Source: Salpingoeca rosetta (taxonomy: Eukaryota > Protista > Choanoflagellata). Taken from it: a stretch of 64,000 nt of DNA. This document shows positions 13,601-45,075 of this stretch, one piece after another. Made by a program: the position numbers and the translations under genes. Numbering within the stretch: the first letter of the stretch is position 1; the number at the start of each line of letters is the position of its first letter. The stretch is taken from NCBI GenBank assembly GCA_033442325.1, contig JAWQFM010000019.1, positions 598,087 to 662,086 of the forward strand, given 5' to 3'. A model generated the notes under the pieces. That model saw only the letters and a list, made by a program, of their open reading frames with translations. It was not told where the DNA came from and searched no databases.

Positions 13601-15822
13601 TTCTCCGCCAGCGTGATGAGCGTGAGGTAGTCTGTCTGTCCGACGGAGACCTGCGTTGCGCCCACGGCCGCGCTGGCCATGACGGCTGCTGCCTCCTGGT
13701 TGAGCTCAAAGGTGAACGGCTCCACCTCCTTCACCAGCACCGTCTCGCTGATGATGTCGTTGTCGGTGAATGTGGCCAGCGCCTGGGCTTCCTCGTACAT
13801 TTCCCGCTCCCCAGCCTGCAGCATCACCTCCACCGTCGTGTCGTCCAGCACTGCGAGCGGGCGCACTTGTGCTGCAAACGCCTTTGTCTTGTTCCGCGCG
13901 TCCACAACCGCACGCGCCAGGTTGAGGCCCGAGATCTTCACCAGCATGTGGTTGTACAGCAGCGCGCTCTTGACGTCACGGCCAAGCAGCTCCGGGTCCT
14001 TGGAAAATTTCGCATTCTGCACACAGGCGGTGACGTTGTTGGTGACGGTGATGCTGCCCAGATCAATGACAACGGCAGTGGTGTCGTATGGCGACAGGGG
14101 CACAACCACGGTCGGCGACGACACAAGAATGTCCACGTGCATGCGCCCGTCTGCTTCTGTATCGTCTTCCACGTCGCCTGCCGCGCTGCTTGTGGCGGTG
14201 GTGCTGCTGCCGCTGCGGTCAGCTGCGTCGTCTGCGTTTGCGGATATGTCCTCGAGGGTCGTGAGGACAGGAGCAATGAACTCCAGTACGCCCGCAATGA
14301 AGTCCGGCAGCACAAAGATACGCAGCGGCGCTGGGATGGATTATGTGTGCGTGTGAGCGTGTGTGAAGATGTGTGTGTGCACATGTGTGTGTTTAAACAT
14401 GTGTGCGTGTGCGTGTGTGTGTTAAGATGTGTGTGTGTGTGTGAGAGTAAATTTACGAGCGCGGCGTGCAAAATAAAGTACATGAATGCGGGTAGGTGTG
14501 TGTAAAAGCACCTACGCATTGAGGAACACACGAGTCACGCGTGTACCTGCTCGCAGGGAGATGCTAAGGGGAACCTGGCCCTGCTTCGGGTCTGCTTCCA
14601 GCAACAGCTGTGTCTGTGTTGAGAGTTAGATAGTGGGAACATTGGAGGTGAAACAGGTTGTCAGATAGACGCTTCATATTGCCTCGGGGCAAACCAACTG
14701 GGGGGGGGGGGGGGTGTTCGACCTACCGATCTTTCGAGCGGTTGTGCATGCAATTTTCGCGCGTTCAAGCGTAGGCACACGTGCACACACACACGTGCAC
14801 ACACACACGCACGCATGCGAACAACACCGCCAACAGAACCAACACCGCCATCGCGAGCCAAACGGGTCCGTTGTACTCACGTCGATGAGAGTGTCGGATG
14901 CAATGACGTCAATGACGTCCCTGTACAGGTAGCCTTCATCATTCACCACGCTGTGGTTTCGCAAGCGTGGCTGGCCAAGCTGCGCCTGAATTGTGGTCTG
15001 CGTGCCGCATTGCACGACGTTTGCGGACAAGTTGTCCACTGAGAGGACAGCTAGGTATGTACGGCCAGTGGCAATGCCAATGTCCAGGCCCGTGCTGTGG
15101 AACGCGATGGCCATATCTGTTGGCCTGACGCGGTCGTCGTCGTCATCATCATCGCCTCCGGCTTGCGGTTGCTGTTGGGTGATGGTGGTGGGCGATGCTG
15201 TGGTGTCACTGCCAGCAGCAGCGGCGGCCCCAGTTGCCTGCGCAGCGCTGAGCTGCGTGGTGCTCCCTTTGCCGTCGTCCCACGCCAGTTCGGCTTGTGC
15301 TGCGGGTGCAGTCATATCTGCGGCGTGGCAGTGAGTGCGTGAGTGCATGCGTGAGTGAGTGCGGGAGTGAGAGAGAGAGAGAGAGAGTGTGTGTGTGTGT
15401 GTGTGCGGGGACATGGGTGTGCAGGTGTGTGAGCTTGTGCGCAAGAATATGTGCATGTGCATGGGGGGGGGTTGTGCTCCGCCGTCTGTGCTGTTGGGCG
15501 CGTCTACAAGCCCGGTTGTGGAAACTGAGGCTGGACACAGAAGGCAAATATGCACTCATGGCTGCACCAACAGCAATGCGTGTGAATATCCCTTCACGCA
15601 CCTGCAATCTTCGTCACCACGCCTTGCACGAGCGGCAACGTCGTCTGTGGAGATTTGCGTGCAGCAACCCAGCAGCACCAGCCGTGACAATGTGAATGAC
15701 GGCAGCGTCAATCGATGGCAACATTGGCAGTTTAAGCTGAGGAAACATACGGCAGGGTATCGAGGAGACAAGCAAGCGAACAGCCCATACCATACACGCA
15801 CGCGTGTACACACACACAAACG

Positions 15823-36440: not shown

Positions 36441-37051
36441 TGTGTCTGTGTCTGTGTCTGTGTTTGTGTCTGTGTCTGTGGGGGGGGGGGGGGGTGGCTG
36501 TGGGTGACTGTGGGTGGCTGTGTGTGTGTGTGTGTGCAAGTAGTCCGTGACACGTGGTTCGGTGTTTGTTGAAACCTGTCCACGAAATTTCGTGCGCAGT
36601 CACACCAGCAAGTAAAATGTGACTGTTCTGACACAGTGACACCGATTCGAGCCAGTGTGACACGTTCGCAACCGCTGTCACTGGAGTGACAGGGACGAGA
36701 TGGACATGGATGTGTGTCATGTGCTGCACACTCGCACACACGCACGGCTGAATTGCATCCAGCAAGCCAGCACAGTAACGACAAGTCCTGTTACAGGAGG
36801 ACACATCACACAGTTACACTGAGAGAGGTTGACAACACAGTCACAGTGACACACACCTCCAAACAAGAACAGCAAGACAGCAGGAAGAGTAGAAAAGGAG
36901 TCGGTTGCATGGCACTTCGAGAGGACTTCGTCCACGCCAGACACTTGTGCACATGCAGCTGCGGTCTTAAGCATTCTCCCAGATACCTTGAACCTGACAC
37001 GGCAGCATGCTGGCAGCGTGTAGTGTCTCCAACACACGCGTGGTTGTGGGG

Positions 37052-37825
<774 letters not shown>

Positions 37826-38271: not shown

Positions 38272-41200
38272 CTACTCCTCATCGTCACTGTCGTTGGGGT
38301 GCGTCTCCATGGTTTGCGCTGCACGCACGGCCAAGTCTGTTGGGTCGCCCCTTCGGAGCAGCACGCACTTGTCAAACTTGAAGCCAATCGACTCGAAGCG
38401 CGACACGCTGGAGAGGAAGACGCCCATGCGGTTGTCGGCGTGCTTGGCCCACGCCTTGAGGCTGGACACAATGTCAAGCACAGCGAGCGCATCCATGCCA
38501 AGCATGCACTCGTCCAGCAGCAAGAAGTTGAGCTTGATGCCCAGGCTCTTCTTCAGCAGCTGGCACGACGCCAGCATCACCGCCAGGCGATAGCGCGCGT
38601 ACTCCGACGTGCTGAGCGAACTCACGCCACCGCTCAGCTCCTCGTCGTCCCACTTCAGCACGGGCTCGTGCAGCAGCCGCTCAAGCGCCGTCTCAAGCAT
38701 GATTGAGGAAACATCTTCTTCCCTGCTGTAGTTGCCGCTGCCGTTGCTGTTCTTTGCTGCTGCTGCGCTCGTGGTTACTGCGGCCGACGACCGTGTCACC
38801 GACGATGCTGTCGTTGACGATGCTGTCGTTGACGATGCTGTCGTTGACGATGTTGGTGCTCCATCGCCACAGTCGTCATCCCCATTATCATCATCATCGT
38901 CCTCGTCGTCGTCATCATCATCTTCACCCGTTCCACCATCATCACCTCTTGCACCACCGTCGTCGTCATCACTGCCAAAGTGGACGGTGAGCCGCTGGCA
39001 CCGGTACAGCGCCTGGGCCTTTGCATACTCCTTGGCCACGTCGGGGTCACTCTGCACTTGGAAAAACTTGTCCAGCCAGTACTGCACGTGACCCTTCACG
39101 CTCTCCACCAGCTTGCCTTGCACCAGCAGCTGGAACGCGTTGAGTCGTGCGTCGTCTGCCCTCGATGTCTCAATACTGCGACGCAGTTCCTGCTGTGTAC
39201 TCACCCACCTGCTCTTCTCCTCCTCCGCTGTCTGCATGTCACGCTGCAGTTGCTGCAGCTGTTCCTCTGCTGCGTTCAGCTTGCGCTGTTGCTCCTTGAG
39301 CTGTGGTCGCTTCTTCTCGAGCTCCTTCTGCGCGCGCTCGCTGAGCGCTTTCTGCTGCGCAATGCTGTTGCTCAGTTGTGTATGTTGTTGCCGTTTCTGC
39401 CGCAAGTTTTTGTTGACCTTAGTGAGCTGACCCTCCAGGGCCTTGATCTTCTCCGAGCAGCGTTCGATGGTGGTCTCGCACTCTCGCCTTCGCTCAGCGA
39501 AGACCTGAAGACAGTCGTCTCCGAGCGGTTGCAAGCACGTGGGGCACGTGGGCTGGTCCTTTAGCTTTCCACGCTTGCTGGTGAGGCTTGACTTCTCTCT
39601 CTTTGCAGCAGCTTGTTCGCCACGTTGCTCACGGATATCATCTTTACATGCGTCCTTGTCTTCCTCCAGCCGCTCAATCTCTGCTTCACAGGTCCGCAGC
39701 TTTGCCTCCAGATCTGCAGTTGCAGAGGAGAAGGGCAGCGCAAGGCGTGTGAATGCGGGAGGGGAGTGGCAGCTGGTGAGCAAGCTCGACAAGTTCACGC
39801 ACGTGCACAGATGTATGCACACACGTTCAAGCAACGTCTAGGTATGCGAACATTTGCAGTCACACACACACATTCGACACACTCACACACACACACACAC
39901 ACACATACAAATGCACACGCACACACATACACACACACACGCACGCACATACAGATGCACGCACACACGCACACACACACACACATACAAATGCACACGC
40001 ACGCACATACAAACACAAACACACACACACACCTGTTGTGCCGTGCTGGGCTGAACCTGCGGCTGAAGCCACCTCCCGTTCCAAGGCACGCACCTCCTTT
40101 TTCAGCTCCTCTACCCTGGTTCGAGCAGAGTCGCATGTCTCCTTCGCGTTCTCACAACATGTCTTGGCGTCTTTCAACTTCCTCACTGCAGTCTCCAGCT
40201 GGGCTGCGGCGTTCTTCTCCTCCTTGGCAGCTTCACGCAACTTGTTCTTGACATCTTCGGCTGCAGCATCAAACGCCTTCAAGTCGAGGACGGCAGCAAT
40301 GGCGCTGCGCGCGGGCTTCGCCCCAGCGGCGCTGGAGGCGCGGAAAAAAGCCGCGTCGCTGAACGGCGTCCAAGCACATATGAGGGGCAGCGCCCACTCA
40401 AGGTCCTCGCCACGCCGCAAATTGAACAGCTCACGTGCGATCGCGTCCGTCTTGTTGGATTTGTTGCCTTTGATGATGCGACCACCAATCTCCACTCTGA
40501 GCTGCTGTGGTTGCTGTCGCTGCTGTCGCTTCTGCCGCTGCTTCAGCTTGCGTGTCACCCTAAACTCTTGCCCATCCACCACGCCTTTCAAGCGGACGAA
40601 CGAGTCACCAGCGCTGTTGGGCCGCAGGTTCCCCATATTGCGGTCCTTGCTGTTGCTGATGTGTGGATCGGCCTTCCCTGTCAAGCACCAGATGATGGAG
40701 GTGGCGCACAGGAGCGTCTTGCCAAAGCCATTGCTCTGCAGGCCGCCAAGGTCCGCGCCAATGAAGCCCAGCCCCACGAAGCTCATGGAGAACGTTTGCT
40801 CGTCGAGGAACGGGCCAAACCCTTTCACGGTCAGGAACTCAAACTTGACCTCCTTTGGTGTGGCGGCTGTGCTGCTGCCGCGTGTTGACTGGCTATCGCC
40901 ATCCGGCGCCACCAGCTCATGGATTCTGTTCAGATCTTCAAGGGCCAAGCCAGAGGCTGTTGTACCGCCTGAGAGGGCAGTTGAGGCTGTGGCACTTGAG
41001 GAAGTTGAGGGTGCGGACGCTGAGGGAGGCGTGGAAGTGGTGAGGGCAGCAGAAGGTGCGGCTGCAGCTCTCGTCGCGTCTGAGGACGAAGGACGTAGAC
41101 GTGCGCGCTCGCTTTCCAAGATGTCGCGCGCTGTGGCGACGCCCAGCTGCTGCCCCAAGTTTGCGTTCTGGGGATCCCGAATAACCACGCGGATTCGAGT

Positions 41201-41821
41201 GTCCATCTCCCGGTAGAGCTTGTAGATGGCTGGGTTGTTGTCTGGTGTTGGTTTCTTCCCAAAGAAGAACAAGGTATCTGTTTTCTTGTTCTTGGCCACT
41301 TCGCGCACCTGCTTCCAGTCGACTTTTGTATGTGTTTCGTCGAGCAGAAAGCACCGCGACGTGCCTTCTCTCATGTGCTGCCATGTCGCTATGCTGTGGA
41401 GACGAACGGCAGGCAAGAAAGAAGGCAAGCGGTGCGCGAAAATGTGGGGTGGAGGATGTTAGTGGAGAAGAAGCGGAGGAGGAAATGAGCGGAGGACACA
41501 GGCATGACGCTATGACGCGCTTGCGTTTAAACAAAACGTCGCAGTGAGGAGCAACGAGGCAGCGGGGTGATATTGACTTACCCTGAATCCATGTCTTCAA
41601 TGACGGTCTTGAACATGGCGTCGCTTCCCATGGAGGACGGTGGGACTATGAAGAAGAGGAGAAGGTGTGTGTGTTTGTGTGTGTGTGTGTGAGTTTGTGT
41701 GTGTGTGTGTTTTTTGTGTACGTGGATATGCAAGAGCACGCGGAAGCAGTCAAATCGGTGTGAGACTTGGTGACAGGTGAGGGATGAGATTGGAGGGGGG
41801 TGGCAAACCGCATGCATGCAT

Positions 41822-41891
<70 letters not shown>

Positions 41892-42271
41892 GTTTTGGGA
41901 CGTTTGGAAGCGGGGTTGCCATTGTCACTCTTCATGAGCGCTTGGCGCTGCTGAATCAGCCTGCAAACGATGTGGTCTTGTCCCAGAGCACCAGTGACGC
42001 TCTGTCGCAGAGGCTCCAGGTCGCTCTCCTCGCATAAGTAGGGGAGATTGGCATTGGAGTTGGGTGGGCAACGCGTTTCAAGGAGGTGTATGCATTCATC
42101 TGTTGAGGCGTTTGTTTTCACCTCAACACCGCATCTGACAAGCAGAAGTTTCGCCTCCAAGTCAGTCAGCTGGTGCTGCAGCTCCTCGACGATATCGGCG
42201 TACAAGGACCCTGGTGTCACCGCTAACCCTTCATCCTTTGTTGCCCTTGCGCTTCGCTTTGCTGAGGACAT
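38272..42271 (-). CDS. SbcC/Rad50/phage gp46-like SMC-superfamily ATPase with zinc hook and N-terminal extension (~1074 aa, 4 exons)
   Basis: Exons 42271-41890, 41645-41582, 41393-40057 (alternative donor ~40033) and 39713-38272 splice in phase with GT-AG. Motifs: [12 protein letters not shown], Walker A SNGFGKT, coiled coil, zinc hook CPTC, coiled coil, signature-like LSTSE, Walker B FLLLDE and D-loop-like LGMD. Confidence 0.85.
38800..38852. repeat. 15-bp coding tandem repeat (GACGATGCTGTCGTT)x~3.5, encoding (TTASS)n in the SbcC-like gene
   Basis: Directly visible in the sequence. Confidence 0.85.
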
Positions 42272-42291
42272 CTCCCGCGCCTGCAGTCTCG

Positions 42292-42425
<134 letters not shown>

Positions 42426-42648: not shown

Positions 42649-45075
42649 ATGGCGTCGCTTGGGGTGCACGAGTGGGCGTGTGTGGCGCAGCAGCTGTTGG
42701 ACGAAGCCCGCCGCTGTACCAGCAGCATGGACAAGCGCAACGTCGTGCGCGCCCTGTTCAACCTCATGCTCACCTCACGCACCTTGTACCACGACCTGGC
42801 CTGGGCCCTGCCAAAGTGGTGCCTCGACGACACGCGCGTGTACAAGGACGTTTCAGCCACGCACTGGCTCGACACCTTCCAGGCTGCTCTTGCGCGCGCG
42901 CTTCCACACGCAGGCCTGCGTGCGGAGGGTATTGCTCAGCGTGACGAGGCAGCGACAACTGTGACAACGACGCAGTGTCAAACCTGTCAAACCAACGACG
43001 GCGACACCACATCATGTACTTGCAGCCGCACGCAGGGCGACGCGTTGAAGCGTTGCACCTCGAGCTCTGTGTGTGGCCGCAGCGATCGCCTCCAAGCTTG
43101 GTTGCAGCAGCGGTTTCTCGTGCACGCTTGGCTTGGCATGACGTGGGAGGCAACCTGCCCATTCCTCTGCGGTGCACGGCAGAGAAACCAGTTCACGCCA
43201 CGCTTCACCCGGGTATTCGCCAGCGTCGCTCGCATTCACTTCCGCAACGCACGCGAGCTGCGCCTGTGGGTGGCTGGCGGGGCTGCCGTACCATCGCCTG
43301 CTGGCGAGCATGCAACCCATGCAGCGGCGCTGCAGAGCTCGGAGCGCACGCGCCCGTGGCAGCATACCACGCCAGGCACATCGTTGCTGTTGCTGCCGGC
43401 GTGGTATTCACTGACCACTGACGATCTTGTGGAGGAGCTGGGCCTTTCACAACAGAATCCTGTTGGAGCAGCGTCAGCGCATTCAACCTTGCCTGCAGAC
43501 ACCACCCGAAACGTGCACGTAGACACTGCCACCACTGCGAGCAGTGCTGCTCCACCAGCCGCCACCGCCACGTCTGATGTCACCCCATCTCCCGATCCCC
43601 GAACGTCGCTTGTCGCGAAGAGGGCGCTGGAGGTGTTGCAGAGGTACAGGGCTGCTCTGGGCGAGAACACAACAGCAACCTGCGCACGCTTGACGATGAG
43701 GGCTCCAGACGACGTGCCACGCCTCTCCTTCCACGACAAGAACCTGAACACGCTACAGCTGACGACGGTCGGCGTCGTTGAGGACATCCACTTTGGTGGT
43801 GCGCCCATCAATGTGCTCGAGTGGACCGTGGCGGAGGCGCAAGCGTGGCTTCCCAGCAGTTTCCGCCACGTTCAAGAGGTCACGATCTCGTGCTTTGGCG
43901 AGTGCATGCTCAACGACGTGGCTGCACTAGAAAATGTGCCACATGTATACCTGCAGCACTTGCCGCGCTTGCAGGATGTGTCCCCGCTGAGAGGCGCGAA
44001 GAAGGTGGTCCTGGAGAGCGTCGGCGTGACGGATGTTGTCGCCTTGCGAGACGTGGAGGACATCACCATCGTCAACTGCGAGCACGTGCAGATGCGGGAT
44101 GTCACGCTCAACGCCAAGCGCGTGCAGCTCACCTTGCTACCGGTGCAAGGCCCAATCCGCCTTCCACATGCCACCGACGTGACCGTTTTCGCCTGCAACA
44201 ACCTGCAGCGTGTCGCGTTTGCAGAGGACATGCACCACCTGTCCCTGAACCGGTGTCGGCGGCTGTCTTTCACCCCGTCCTTCAAGCACGCTAAGCACGT
44301 GGAACTGGGCATTGTCTTTCCCGCAAGCATGCGCAGGGACCTGTACGAGCGTGTGGACCACCTTGTCCTGTTTCACGAGGCCGGCATCTTGCACCCAGCA
44401 CACGTGGACGAGTACAACCTCACGGTTGACATCCGCCACGTGTCCTGCGCGTCCGTCAGCGAGCCGCCGCCTGCGTGCGTCCGGCAGCTGGCACTCAACG
44501 TCGTTGGGACGCAGCCCTTTGATGTGCAGCACCTCGGCTGCGTGCCCGATCTCTGCATCCGTGGCCACCACGACGGCACGGATCTGCAGCACGCTGACGC
44601 CCTGCGTGGCCAGCGCGCCCTGCACCTCACGCGCTGCCGCTTGCCGTCAGGGCACGTGCTCACCGACCACAACATGCTGACCCTGCAGCGCTGCGAAGGG
44701 GAAGCGGTGTGTGTGGACAACATCCGGCACTCCCTGCACGTGCAATGCTCCGGCCTGCGCCTGGACCGCGTCAGCAACGTGCCCAGCATCTGGCTCTCCT
44801 CCATGTCGGCCGTGCACGTGAATGTGATGCAGAACGTGCACACGTGCCACCTCTGGCTGTGCCGCGTGCAGGACTTTGCGCCCTTTGCCACCGTGCAGCG
44901 CGTGCTCTTGGAGGAGTGCCGGTTTGACGAGGACGACGCTACCGGCACCATGCCCGACACCATGGCGTGCCTGCGCATCAACCGCTGCACGACCACAACC
45001 ACGCGGGCAAGCTGGCCAGACCTCACCCTCATCAACACACCCAAGAACCACATCCTCGCAGCGCTGCGTGGCTGA
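42649..45075 (+). CDS. Intronless leucine-rich-repeat protein (808 aa), possible degenerate F-box-like N-terminus
   Basis: An uninterrupted ORF with LRR-like units (LNDVAALENVPHVYLQHLPRLQDVSPLRGAKKVVLESVGVTDVVALRDVEDITIVNC; VQDFAPFATVQRVLLEEC). Confidence 0.8.
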   Translation: MASLGVHEWACVAQQLLDEARRCTSSMDKRNVVRALFNLMLTSRTLYHDLAWALPKWCLDDTRVYKDVSATHWLDTFQAALARALPHAGLRAEGIAQRDEAATTVTTTQCQTCQTNDGDTTSCTCSRTQGDALKRCTSSSVCGRSDRLQAWLQQRFLVHAWLGMTWEATCPFLCGARQRNQFTPRFTRVFASVARIHFRNARELRLWVAGGAAVPSPAGEHATHAAALQSSERTRPWQHTTPGTSLLLLPAWYSLTTDDLVEELGLSQQNPVGAASAHSTLPADTTRNVHVDTATTASSAAPPAATATSDVTPSPDPRTSLVAKRALEVLQRYRAALGENTTATCARLTMRAPDDVPRLSFHDKNLNTLQLTTVGVVEDIHFGGAPINVLEWTVAEAQAWLPSSFRHVQEVTISCFGECMLNDVAALENVPHVYLQHLPRLQDVSPLRGAKKVVLESVGVTDVVALRDVEDITIVNCEHVQMRDVTLNAKRVQLTLLPVQGPIRLPHATDVTVFACNNLQRVAFAEDMHHLSLNRCRRLSFTPSFKHAKHVELGIVFPASMRRDLYERVDHLVLFHEAGILHPAHVDEYNLTVDIRHVSCASVSEPPPACVRQLALNVVGTQPFDVQHLGCVPDLCIRGHHDGTDLQHADALRGQRALHLTRCRLPSGHVLTDHNMLTLQRCEGEAVCVDNIRHSLHVQCSGLRLDRVSNVPSIWLSSMSAVHVNVMQNVHTCHLWLCRVQDFAPFATVQRVLLEECRFDEDDATGTMPDTMACLRINRCTTTTTRASWPDLTLINTPKNHILAALRG

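Follow-up and report, generated by a model that had tools for sequence, protein, structure and literature searches.

A nuclease-less relative of the viral-type Mre11-Rad50 fusions, encoded by an intron-bearing gene of the choanoflagellate Salpingoeca rosetta

The 64,000-nucleotide (nt) stretch of Salpingoeca rosetta DNA analysed here (the window; contig JAWQFM010000019.1, positions 598,087–662,086) carries on its minus strand the gene PTSG_07399, whose product is a Rad50/SbcC-type ATPase of a clade that lacks the nuclease domain of its closest relatives. The coding sequence is 3249 nt long and encodes 1082 amino acids (aa). It consists of four minus-strand exons joined in frame and ending in a single stop, in agreement with an earlier note, made from the letters of the sequence, which had described four in-phase exons. 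The spliced product is residue-for-residue identical to the known S. rosetta protein PTSG_07399 / XP_004990899.1 (P0001 in our searches), so the gene model is already public in NCBI; its automatic name in UniRef is ‘Rad50/SbcC-type AAA domain-containing protein’. No paper mentioning PTSG_07399 was found when the literature was searched by locus tag, nor any on Rad50-like immune proteins of choanoflagellates. Two papers that name S. rosetta alongside RAD50 give no account of its RAD50/MRE11 complement. All three introns have GT..AG borders (Table 1). CA repeats, which the earlier note had ascribed to the introns generally, are present in introns 1 and 3 and absent from intron 2. Perfect (AC/GT)n arrays of at least eight units occur 90 times in the window, and such arrays are a property of the S. 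rosetta genome.

The exon junctions, for which RNA had been named as the check, agree with a transcript contig of 2743 nt from run X4. This contig aligns with 41900–42285, 41582–41647, 40038–41393 and 38823–39716, and so touches and joins all four exons. Intron 2 is absent from it exactly, with position 41393 joined to 41582 (CT..AC on the plus strand); introns 1 and 3 are also skipped, with two to three ambiguous letters, as expected beside masked repeats. The genomic, unspliced form of the gene is present in run X1. Raw RNA reads (runs X17 and X18) cover the 3’ part of the gene with the first mate on the plus strand, an orientation that fits minus-strand RNA. PTSG_07399 is a real, spliced and transcribed four-exon gene of S. 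rosetta. Between 38805 and 38939 the read depth is 10–100 times that of the remainder of the gene, loose ends are numerous, and positions 38886, 38901 and 38902 look variable. Both the spike and the seeming variants arise because reads of other Asp-rich (GAT/GAC) genes cross-map onto an acidic insert in the protein, and they are not real variation.

The protein has the features of a Rad50/SbcC-type ATPase: a split ABC head joined by an antiparallel coiled coil, with Walker A, Walker B, the D-loop and the Ser of the signature all present. In an AlphaFold2 model built from a 41-sequence alignment, both lobes of the head and the helices 520–653 and 668–820 have a predicted local distance difference test score (pLDDT) of about 85–96, and a CPTC motif lies at the turn between the helices. 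The arms of the coiled coil have only about 134 and 153 residues, and 330 aa of N-terminal extension precede the head. Foldseek matched the model to Rad50, MukB, JetC, Smc, LmuB and SbcC; the best structural match was the head of E. coli SbcC, and the top matches by E-value were C. thermophilum Rad50, MukB and JetC. By this model and these matches, the fold of PTSG_07399 is of the Rad50/SbcC type. The three motifs singled out by the earlier note, SNGFGKT, CPTC and FLLLDE, are where it had placed them.

Profile searches with the protein gave results of varying strength. The family PHROG 77 (‘SbcC-like subunit of palindrome specific endonuclease’, the gp46 family) matched co-linearly over the N lobe (E 7e-9), the coil (8e-13) and the C lobe (4e-5). 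On the full protein, Pfam AAA_23 scored 21.2 bits (E 4.8e-4), short of its gathering cut-off of 27. The exon products gave only coiled-coil noise with Pfam and NCBIfam, and neither SbcC_Walker_B nor Rad50_zn_hook was matched. The LmuB models of PADLOC matched at best with E 1.5e-8, over the coiled coil and not the head, and the PbeC/DndD models matched weakly. In phmmer searches of single lobes against the PDB, the N lobe had no match and the C lobe matched only generic ABC transporters. A word-index search with exon 3 found no match, the annotated protein of 1082 aa being outside the length window of that search. The ESM Atlas search with exon 3 gave Rad50/SbcC AAA_23 clusters at 0.87, which is a lead only.

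An exhaustive HMMER search of 1.84 billion representative proteins (E ≤ 1e-3) found only 40 relatives, which fall into two groups, A and B. Group A has 14 sequences including P0001, and none has a nuclease domain. It also holds transcripts of the choanoflagellates Choanoeca flexa (P0003) and Stephanoeca diplocostata (P0006), together with metagenomic sequences. Its members share SNGFGKT, WCLTG, the CxxC hook, a signature LS[TFG]SE[YWF] and a Walker B followed by Cys. In group B, an N-terminal Mre11/SbcD phosphoesterase (DLH, GDFWH, GNHD, GHYH) is fused to an ATPase with SNGSGKT, LSGGQW and LDEP. Pfam Metallophos was found in 18 members of group B; the Metallophos match and the GNHD motif are absent from P0001 and the other members of group A. 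The CxxC hook is conserved in all full-length members of both groups. Zinc binding by the CPTC of S. rosetta is predicted, and the group A profile matched the P. furiosus Rad50 hook (1l8d) weakly, with E 0.018.

Group B is a family already known from the literature: the non-canonical Mre11/Rad50 fusions of the Mimivirus R555 type, which occur in giant viruses, phages and algae. As described by Yoshida, Claverie and Ogata in 2011, this family comprises Mimivirus R555, a moss-diatom-prasinophyte group, Dictyostelium, plasmids and a phage, and it is placed outside the canonical eukaryotic, archaeal and bacterial Mre11/Rad50 clades (PMC3175470). The organisms that carry a fusion keep canonical Mre11/Rad50 as well, and the fusions were described as sporadic, probably spread by viruses and of a role not known (PMC3175470). 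Group A is a small, previously undescribed nuclease-less clade beside the fusion family. Because the phosphoesterase domain is missing from all its members, it is best classed as a derived sister clade of the R555-type fusions and not as a strict part of the family. No further group A loci were found in IMG/VR (queried with the profile of group A as well as with P0016, P0011 and P0033) or in JGI metagenome contigs. In a word-index search the profile of group A brought up only three proteins, because coiled-coil words saturated the list of candidates.

A few observations concern group B itself. One member comes from Mesostigma viride. The gene contexts agree with a viral family: one gene is on a contig with RNA polymerase Rpb1, MutS and PCNA, another is accompanied by heliorhodopsin and a potassium channel on a contig of 463 kb, and a third is on a phage-like contig. 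The first of these, giant-virus contig L009, has a patatin-like gene (14415–15353) 1.5 kb downstream of the fusion gene, and its MutS gene is a fragment. In the algal-type fusions P0012, P0014, P0018, P0024, P0027, P0029 and P0038, Gln replaces His at the H-loop (ILQDLAAEELE); the same subclade has long N-terminal extensions that resemble targeting sequences.

Profiles and trees were used to place the two groups. The group A profile matched the group B protein P0027 with E 1.4e-46, and against the PDB it matched no Rad50, SbcC or SMC head. A joint profile of both groups matched E. coli SbcC (1e-34), M. jannaschii Rad50 (3e-31), T. maritima Rad50 (1e-27), C. thermophilum RAD50 (1e-22) and human RAD50 (4e-19). 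A maximum-likelihood tree was built from the concatenated lobes (Q.pfam+I+G4), with E. coli SbcC, T4 gp46 and one bacterial SbcC-like protein as outgroups. In this tree group A is monophyletic (99.7/100), S. rosetta is sister to C. flexa (97.5/100), and groups A and B branch together, apart from the outgroups (99/100). A tree of the N lobe, with all group A members, also has group A monophyletic (99.5/100) and joins it to giant-virus-like fusions (97.5/80). Here the three choanoflagellate sequences and two metagenomic ones form one subclade with support of 73–87. The nearest relatives of group A are therefore probably the giant-virus-like fusions, which points to a viral affinity of the clade. 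Horizontal acquisition of the gene is plausible and could have gone in either direction; any transfer would be old, because the gene is common to several choanoflagellates (S. rosetta, C. flexa and S. diplocostata).

Residues on which ATP hydrolysis depends in related proteins are changed throughout group A. At the Q-loop the alignment has LSQGQ in SbcC and FHGQH or IWTQR (GQH or W[TSN]Q) in group B; in group A the Gln is gone and the position reads WTPFS or WNRFS. The H-loop is SH in SbcC, gp46 and the viral fusions, but SS, AT, AS or AA in group A. Both the Q-loop Gln and the H-loop His are missing in 13 of 13 members of group A. The Gly-Gly of the signature is also replaced (LSTSE in S. rosetta), while its Ser, Walker A, the Asp-Glu of Walker B and the D-loop are kept. 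A second candidate for the signature, LSGG at aa 962–965, was rejected: in both groups 30 aa separate the signature from Walker B, which points to LSTSE at 969–973. With the Q-loop and H-loop residues replaced, LSTSE as the signature and no phosphoesterase, proteins of group A probably hydrolyse ATP slowly or not at all, and probably do not cut DNA themselves.

Table 1. Exons, introns and protein features of PTSG_07399 (positions are those of the window)
Feature	Position	Strand	Description
Exon 1	41890..42271	-	aa 1-127 plus 1 nt; helical N-terminal region; covered by spliced contig
Intron 1	41646..41889	-	244 nt, GT..AG; contains (CA)33 + (TG)8 array
Exon 2	41582..41645	-	64 nt, aa 128-149
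Intron 2	41394..41581	-	188 nt, GTAAGT..CAG; without microsatellite; explicit joint in run X4
Exon 3	40033..41393	-	aa 149-603: mid region, S/T/A-rich linker, ATPase N lobe, start of coiled-coil arm 1
Intron 3	39714..40032	-	319 nt, GT..AG; imperfect CA repeats
Exon 4	38272..39713	-	aa 603-1082 plus stop: remainder of arm 1, hook, arm 2, acidic insert, ATPase C lobe
ATPase N lobe	40340..40855	-	aa 329-500, pLDDT about 90
Walker A SNGFGKT	40715..40735	-	aa 369-375; N370, G371, G373 and K374 invariant within group A
Q-loop position WTPFS	40358..40372	-	aa 490-494; Pro where Rad50/SbcC and the fusion family have Gln (alignment)
CPTC zinc-hook motif	39535..39546	-	aa 659-662; apex between helices 520-653 and 668-820
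Asp-rich and Ser/Thr-rich low-complexity insert	38704..38958	-	aa 855-939; not in relatives; disordered in model
ATPase C lobe	38320..38712	-	aa 937-1067, pLDDT about 90; PHROG 77 E 4e-5
Signature motif LSTSE	38602..38616	-	aa 969-973; same 30-aa distance to Walker B in groups A and B
Walker B FLLLDE	38509..38526	-	aa 999-1004; then D-loop GMD
H-loop position FLSSV	38404..38420	-	aa 1035-1039; Ser where SbcC, gp46 and viral fusions have His (alignment)

The R555-type fusions are the nearest sequence relatives of the ATPase part of PTSG_07399. They share with group A the motifs GFGPF, SNGxGK[ST] and LW.LTG, the CxxC hook and the signature-Walker B spacing, and like group A they occur in eukaryotes. 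Unlike them, PTSG_07399 has no N-terminal Mre11 phosphoesterase (DxH, GDxxH, GNHD, GHxH) and has lost the Gln of the Q-loop and the His of the H-loop. Its signature is LSTSE in place of their LSGG[QE], its Walker B is followed by Cys (DEC), and its N-terminal region is lineage-specific and unrelated to theirs.

The likeness to SbcC and gp46 lies in the rank of SbcC as the top PDB match of the joint profile, in the PHROG 77 matches to all three parts of the protein, and in the short-to-medium hooked coiled coil. Identity over the head is only about 16%, however, and both proteins are outgroups to groups A and B in the trees. SbcC and gp46 also keep the Q-loop and H-loop residues and are paired with a separate SbcD/gp47 nuclease encoded nearby; in PTSG_07399 these residues are replaced, and no such nuclease gene was found in the 64-kb window. 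The proposal of a horizontally acquired SbcC/gp46-like gene is thus upheld as to the likeness, by PHROG 77 and the SbcC head match, but not as a direct import from bacteria or phages, since the gene belongs to a clade of its own near the viral-type fusions.

Eukaryotic RAD50 has the split ABC head, the antiparallel coiled coil and the CxxC zinc hook in common with PTSG_07399. In RAD50 the ATPase lobe is at the N terminus, the arms are several times longer and the signature is of the CSAGQ type; PTSG_07399 differs in its N-terminal extension, its short arms and LSTSE. Similarity to RAD50 in the profile searches was much weaker than to SbcC (4e-19 for human RAD50 vs 1e-34 with the joint profile), and the group A profile found none. 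That the protein is a Rad50/SbcC-type ATPase but not canonical RAD50, as the earlier note had held, agrees with these differences, and profile scores, structure scores and the published tree all indicate that PTSG_07399 is distinct from canonical eukaryotic RAD50. The phylogeny that the note had suggested as a check was run with SbcC and T4 gp46, both of which fell outside A and B; the separation from RAD50 came from the profile and structure scores.

With the SMC-like defence ATPases (Lamassu LmuB, JetC, PbeC, DndD), PTSG_07399 shares an SMC/Rad50-like head, a short coiled coil and the lack of an intrinsic nuclease, besides the Foldseek matches and the weak PADLOC ones. Defence-type neighbours beside some relatives in group A are a further likeness. 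It differs in that the LmuB matches are mainly over the coiled coil; neither an LmuA-like effector nor a kleisin partner was observed, and its zinc hook and head motifs tie it to the Rad50/SbcC fusion family and not to LmuB.

The N-terminal third has no recognisable counterpart in the databases searched. Residues 1–330 matched no Pfam family and nothing in Foldseek, and the ESM Atlas had nothing for the first 255 aa; the exon 1 product had no match in Pfam, NCBIfam, PADLOC or PHROG. Confidence for residues 1–330 is low in both AlphaFold2 models. A model of the N-terminal region has a mean pLDDT of 54, with helices at 20–116, of which only 20–70 are confident. A Death-fold (DD/DED/CARD/PYD) in exon 1 was looked for and found neither by Pfam (E ≤ 1) nor by Foldseek, the same weak model (mean pLDDT 54) being the one searched. 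Directly ahead of the N lobe is a short helix (aa 300–310, pLDDT about 87), at the place where the fusions carry Rad50-binding helices. A hidden Markov model (HMM) of the group B linker – the segment after the nuclease that binds Rad50 – matched the segment before the N lobe of P0004 with 15.7 bits, vs 8.0 for the best shuffle, and P0021 and P0006 also scored above their shuffles (10–12 bits). Because of these linker-like segments, the sequences hint that group A may have originated from a fusion by loss of the nuclease. As a candidate remnant of an Mre11 C-terminal linker in S. rosetta, aa 150–250 were rejected (hhalign E 0.12, not significant; linker HMM silent).

No Mre11/SbcD-like open reading frame (ORF) was found in the window, as the earlier note had stated: an HMM of the fusion nuclease domains, E. 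coli SbcD and T4 gp47, run on the six-frame translation, gave a best E of 0.16. The ORFs that flank PTSG_07399 have no confident family match in Pfam, and no LmuA-like effector is adjacent. Upstream, a perfect (TG)64 microsatellite (42295–42422) makes up one third of the 378-bp divergent intergenic region between the ATG at 42271 and the start of a plus-strand ORF at 42649. This ORF encodes 808 aa and has no Pfam match. Downstream, the plus-strand ORF 37007–37825 has an unbroken run of ca. 40 Asp codons (37099–37341), which read as poly-Met, poly-Ser or poly-His in other frames; its sole Pfam match is a weak match of the acidic tract to Nop14.

Outside the choanoflagellates, the genes of group A have no interruption in their ORFs and lie on compact contigs whose coding density is 0.76–0.90. 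These contigs have no Shine-Dalgarno-like motifs, and their start contexts are A-rich. On one (L003:4162-15825), P0011 – a protein of 1404 aa with a 620-aa N-terminal region whose fold was not recognised – is encoded between two patatin-like genes, 3 kb from a NACHT gene. On another locus (L001:891-10031 and L002), the gene for P0016 lies between PNP_UDP_1 and GmrSD-type genes on one side and a GT4-conflict glycosyltransferase on the other, with a 40-bp gap to a divergent ORF. Two other group A contigs hold ORFans only. Conflict-type neighbours on two contigs are too few to claim an association.

The reading we favour, with moderate confidence, is that PTSG_07399 encodes an expressed Rad50/SbcC-type ATPase of a nuclease-less, fusion-related clade which acts as an ATP-gated DNA clamp or sensor and probably derives from a viral-type fusion gene. 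By analogy with the heads of Rad50 and SbcC, the protein would dimerise through its zinc hook and clamp DNA by ATP-driven engagement of the heads. It would then be a slow-cycling, ATP-gated binder of DNA ends or DNA structures (a tether or a sensor) rather than a resection enzyme, and its output may pass through the lineage-specific N-terminal region or through some partner. Group A would most likely have arisen when a viral-type fusion gene lost its nuclease, and the clade would have been in choanoflagellates long enough for introns to be gained and for several species to share the gene. Several points weigh against this reading. RNA depth over the gene is low and 3’-biased (X17, X18). Slow or absent hydrolysis is deduced from motif loss, for which other residues could compensate, and the nuclease search covered the 64-kb window, so an Mre11-like partner elsewhere in the genome is possible. 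The group B linker HMM gave no match in the S. rosetta protein P0001, and the root among the group B subclades is weakly supported in the concatenated-lobe tree (9.9/59 at the relevant node). The trees held no eukaryotic RAD50 or SMC5/6 sequences, so that it is the profile scores, the structure scores and the published tree (PMC3175470) that exclude RAD50.

A role nearer to innate immunity can be imagined, in which broken or foreign DNA is detected by the SMC/Rad50-like module and the N-terminal domain passes on the signal, as in a eukaryotic counterpart of Lamassu LmuB. The NACHT gene and the two patatins beside one group A gene, the GmrSD, PNP_UDP_1 and GT4-conflict genes beside another, and LmuB among the PADLOC and Foldseek matches (with PbeC/DndD weaker) would all suit this, and loss of catalytic motifs is what a sensor or switch might have. 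We nevertheless consider it unlikely: the informative neighbourhoods are just two, set against two contigs of ORFans, and gene neighbours are in any case a poor guide to function in eukaryotes; the LmuB matches miss the head; and the N-terminal region matches no Death, TIR or other signalling domain by Pfam or fold. A more elaborate version, in which choanoflagellates domesticated a giant-virus fusion gene, dropped its nuclease and hydrolysis residues and added an N-terminal output domain, making a Lamassu-like sensor of foreign or broken DNA, is speculative and slightly less likely. We give a similarly small chance to a working repair or recombination ATPase, equivalent to the fusions or to SbcCD, that is paired with an unlinked Mre11/SbcD-like nuclease. 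The conserved head, hook, Walker A, Walker B and D-loop would be expected of such an enzyme, and the confident helix at aa 300–310 has the position of the Rad50-binding helices of the fusions. However, the catalytic Gln and His are gone from every group A member compared, none of the members has a Metallophos domain, and no nuclease gene was found in the window.

Two further explanations are much less probable. The gene could be a decaying relic of a viral insertion, transcribed without function, and the lost catalytic residues, the large low-complexity insert (aa 855–939) and the low RNA depth are in keeping with decay. Yet a frame of 1082 codons is intact over three precisely spliced introns, the substitutions occur throughout the clade, with the Walker A and Walker B motifs, the hook and the Ser of the signature still conserved, and two other choanoflagellates have orthologue-like sequences, all of which makes a relic very improbable. 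Least probable of all is a highly diverged canonical RAD50 or another SMC protein (SMC5/6) with no separate lineage. The high rank of C. thermophilum Rad50, MukB and JetC by Foldseek E-value would allow it, as generic similarity of fold. Against it, the group A profile finds P0027 and no RAD50 or SMC head in the PDB, the joint profile favours SbcC and archaeal Rad50 far over eukaryotic RAD50, the arm length, N-terminal extension and signature are unlike those of RAD50, and the published tree sets the fusion family outside the canonical clades (PMC3175470).

In total, what is added by this analysis is a nuclease-less and catalytically degenerate clade next to the Mre11-Rad50 fusions, present in three choanoflagellates and probably of viral affinity. 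If the S. rosetta protein were only a slow-evolving repair accessory, this would be a modest addition to the Rad50/SbcC family tree. PTSG_07399 shows that the fusion lineage has a nuclease-less branch with degenerate catalytic residues, and that this branch has become fixed, with introns, in the nearest living kin of animals. S. rosetta is genetically tractable, and so offers a system for the role of a Rad50-type clamp after it has lost cutting and, probably, hydrolysis. It could also show whether virus-derived SMC-like proteins were recruited for DNA sensing in early holozoans.

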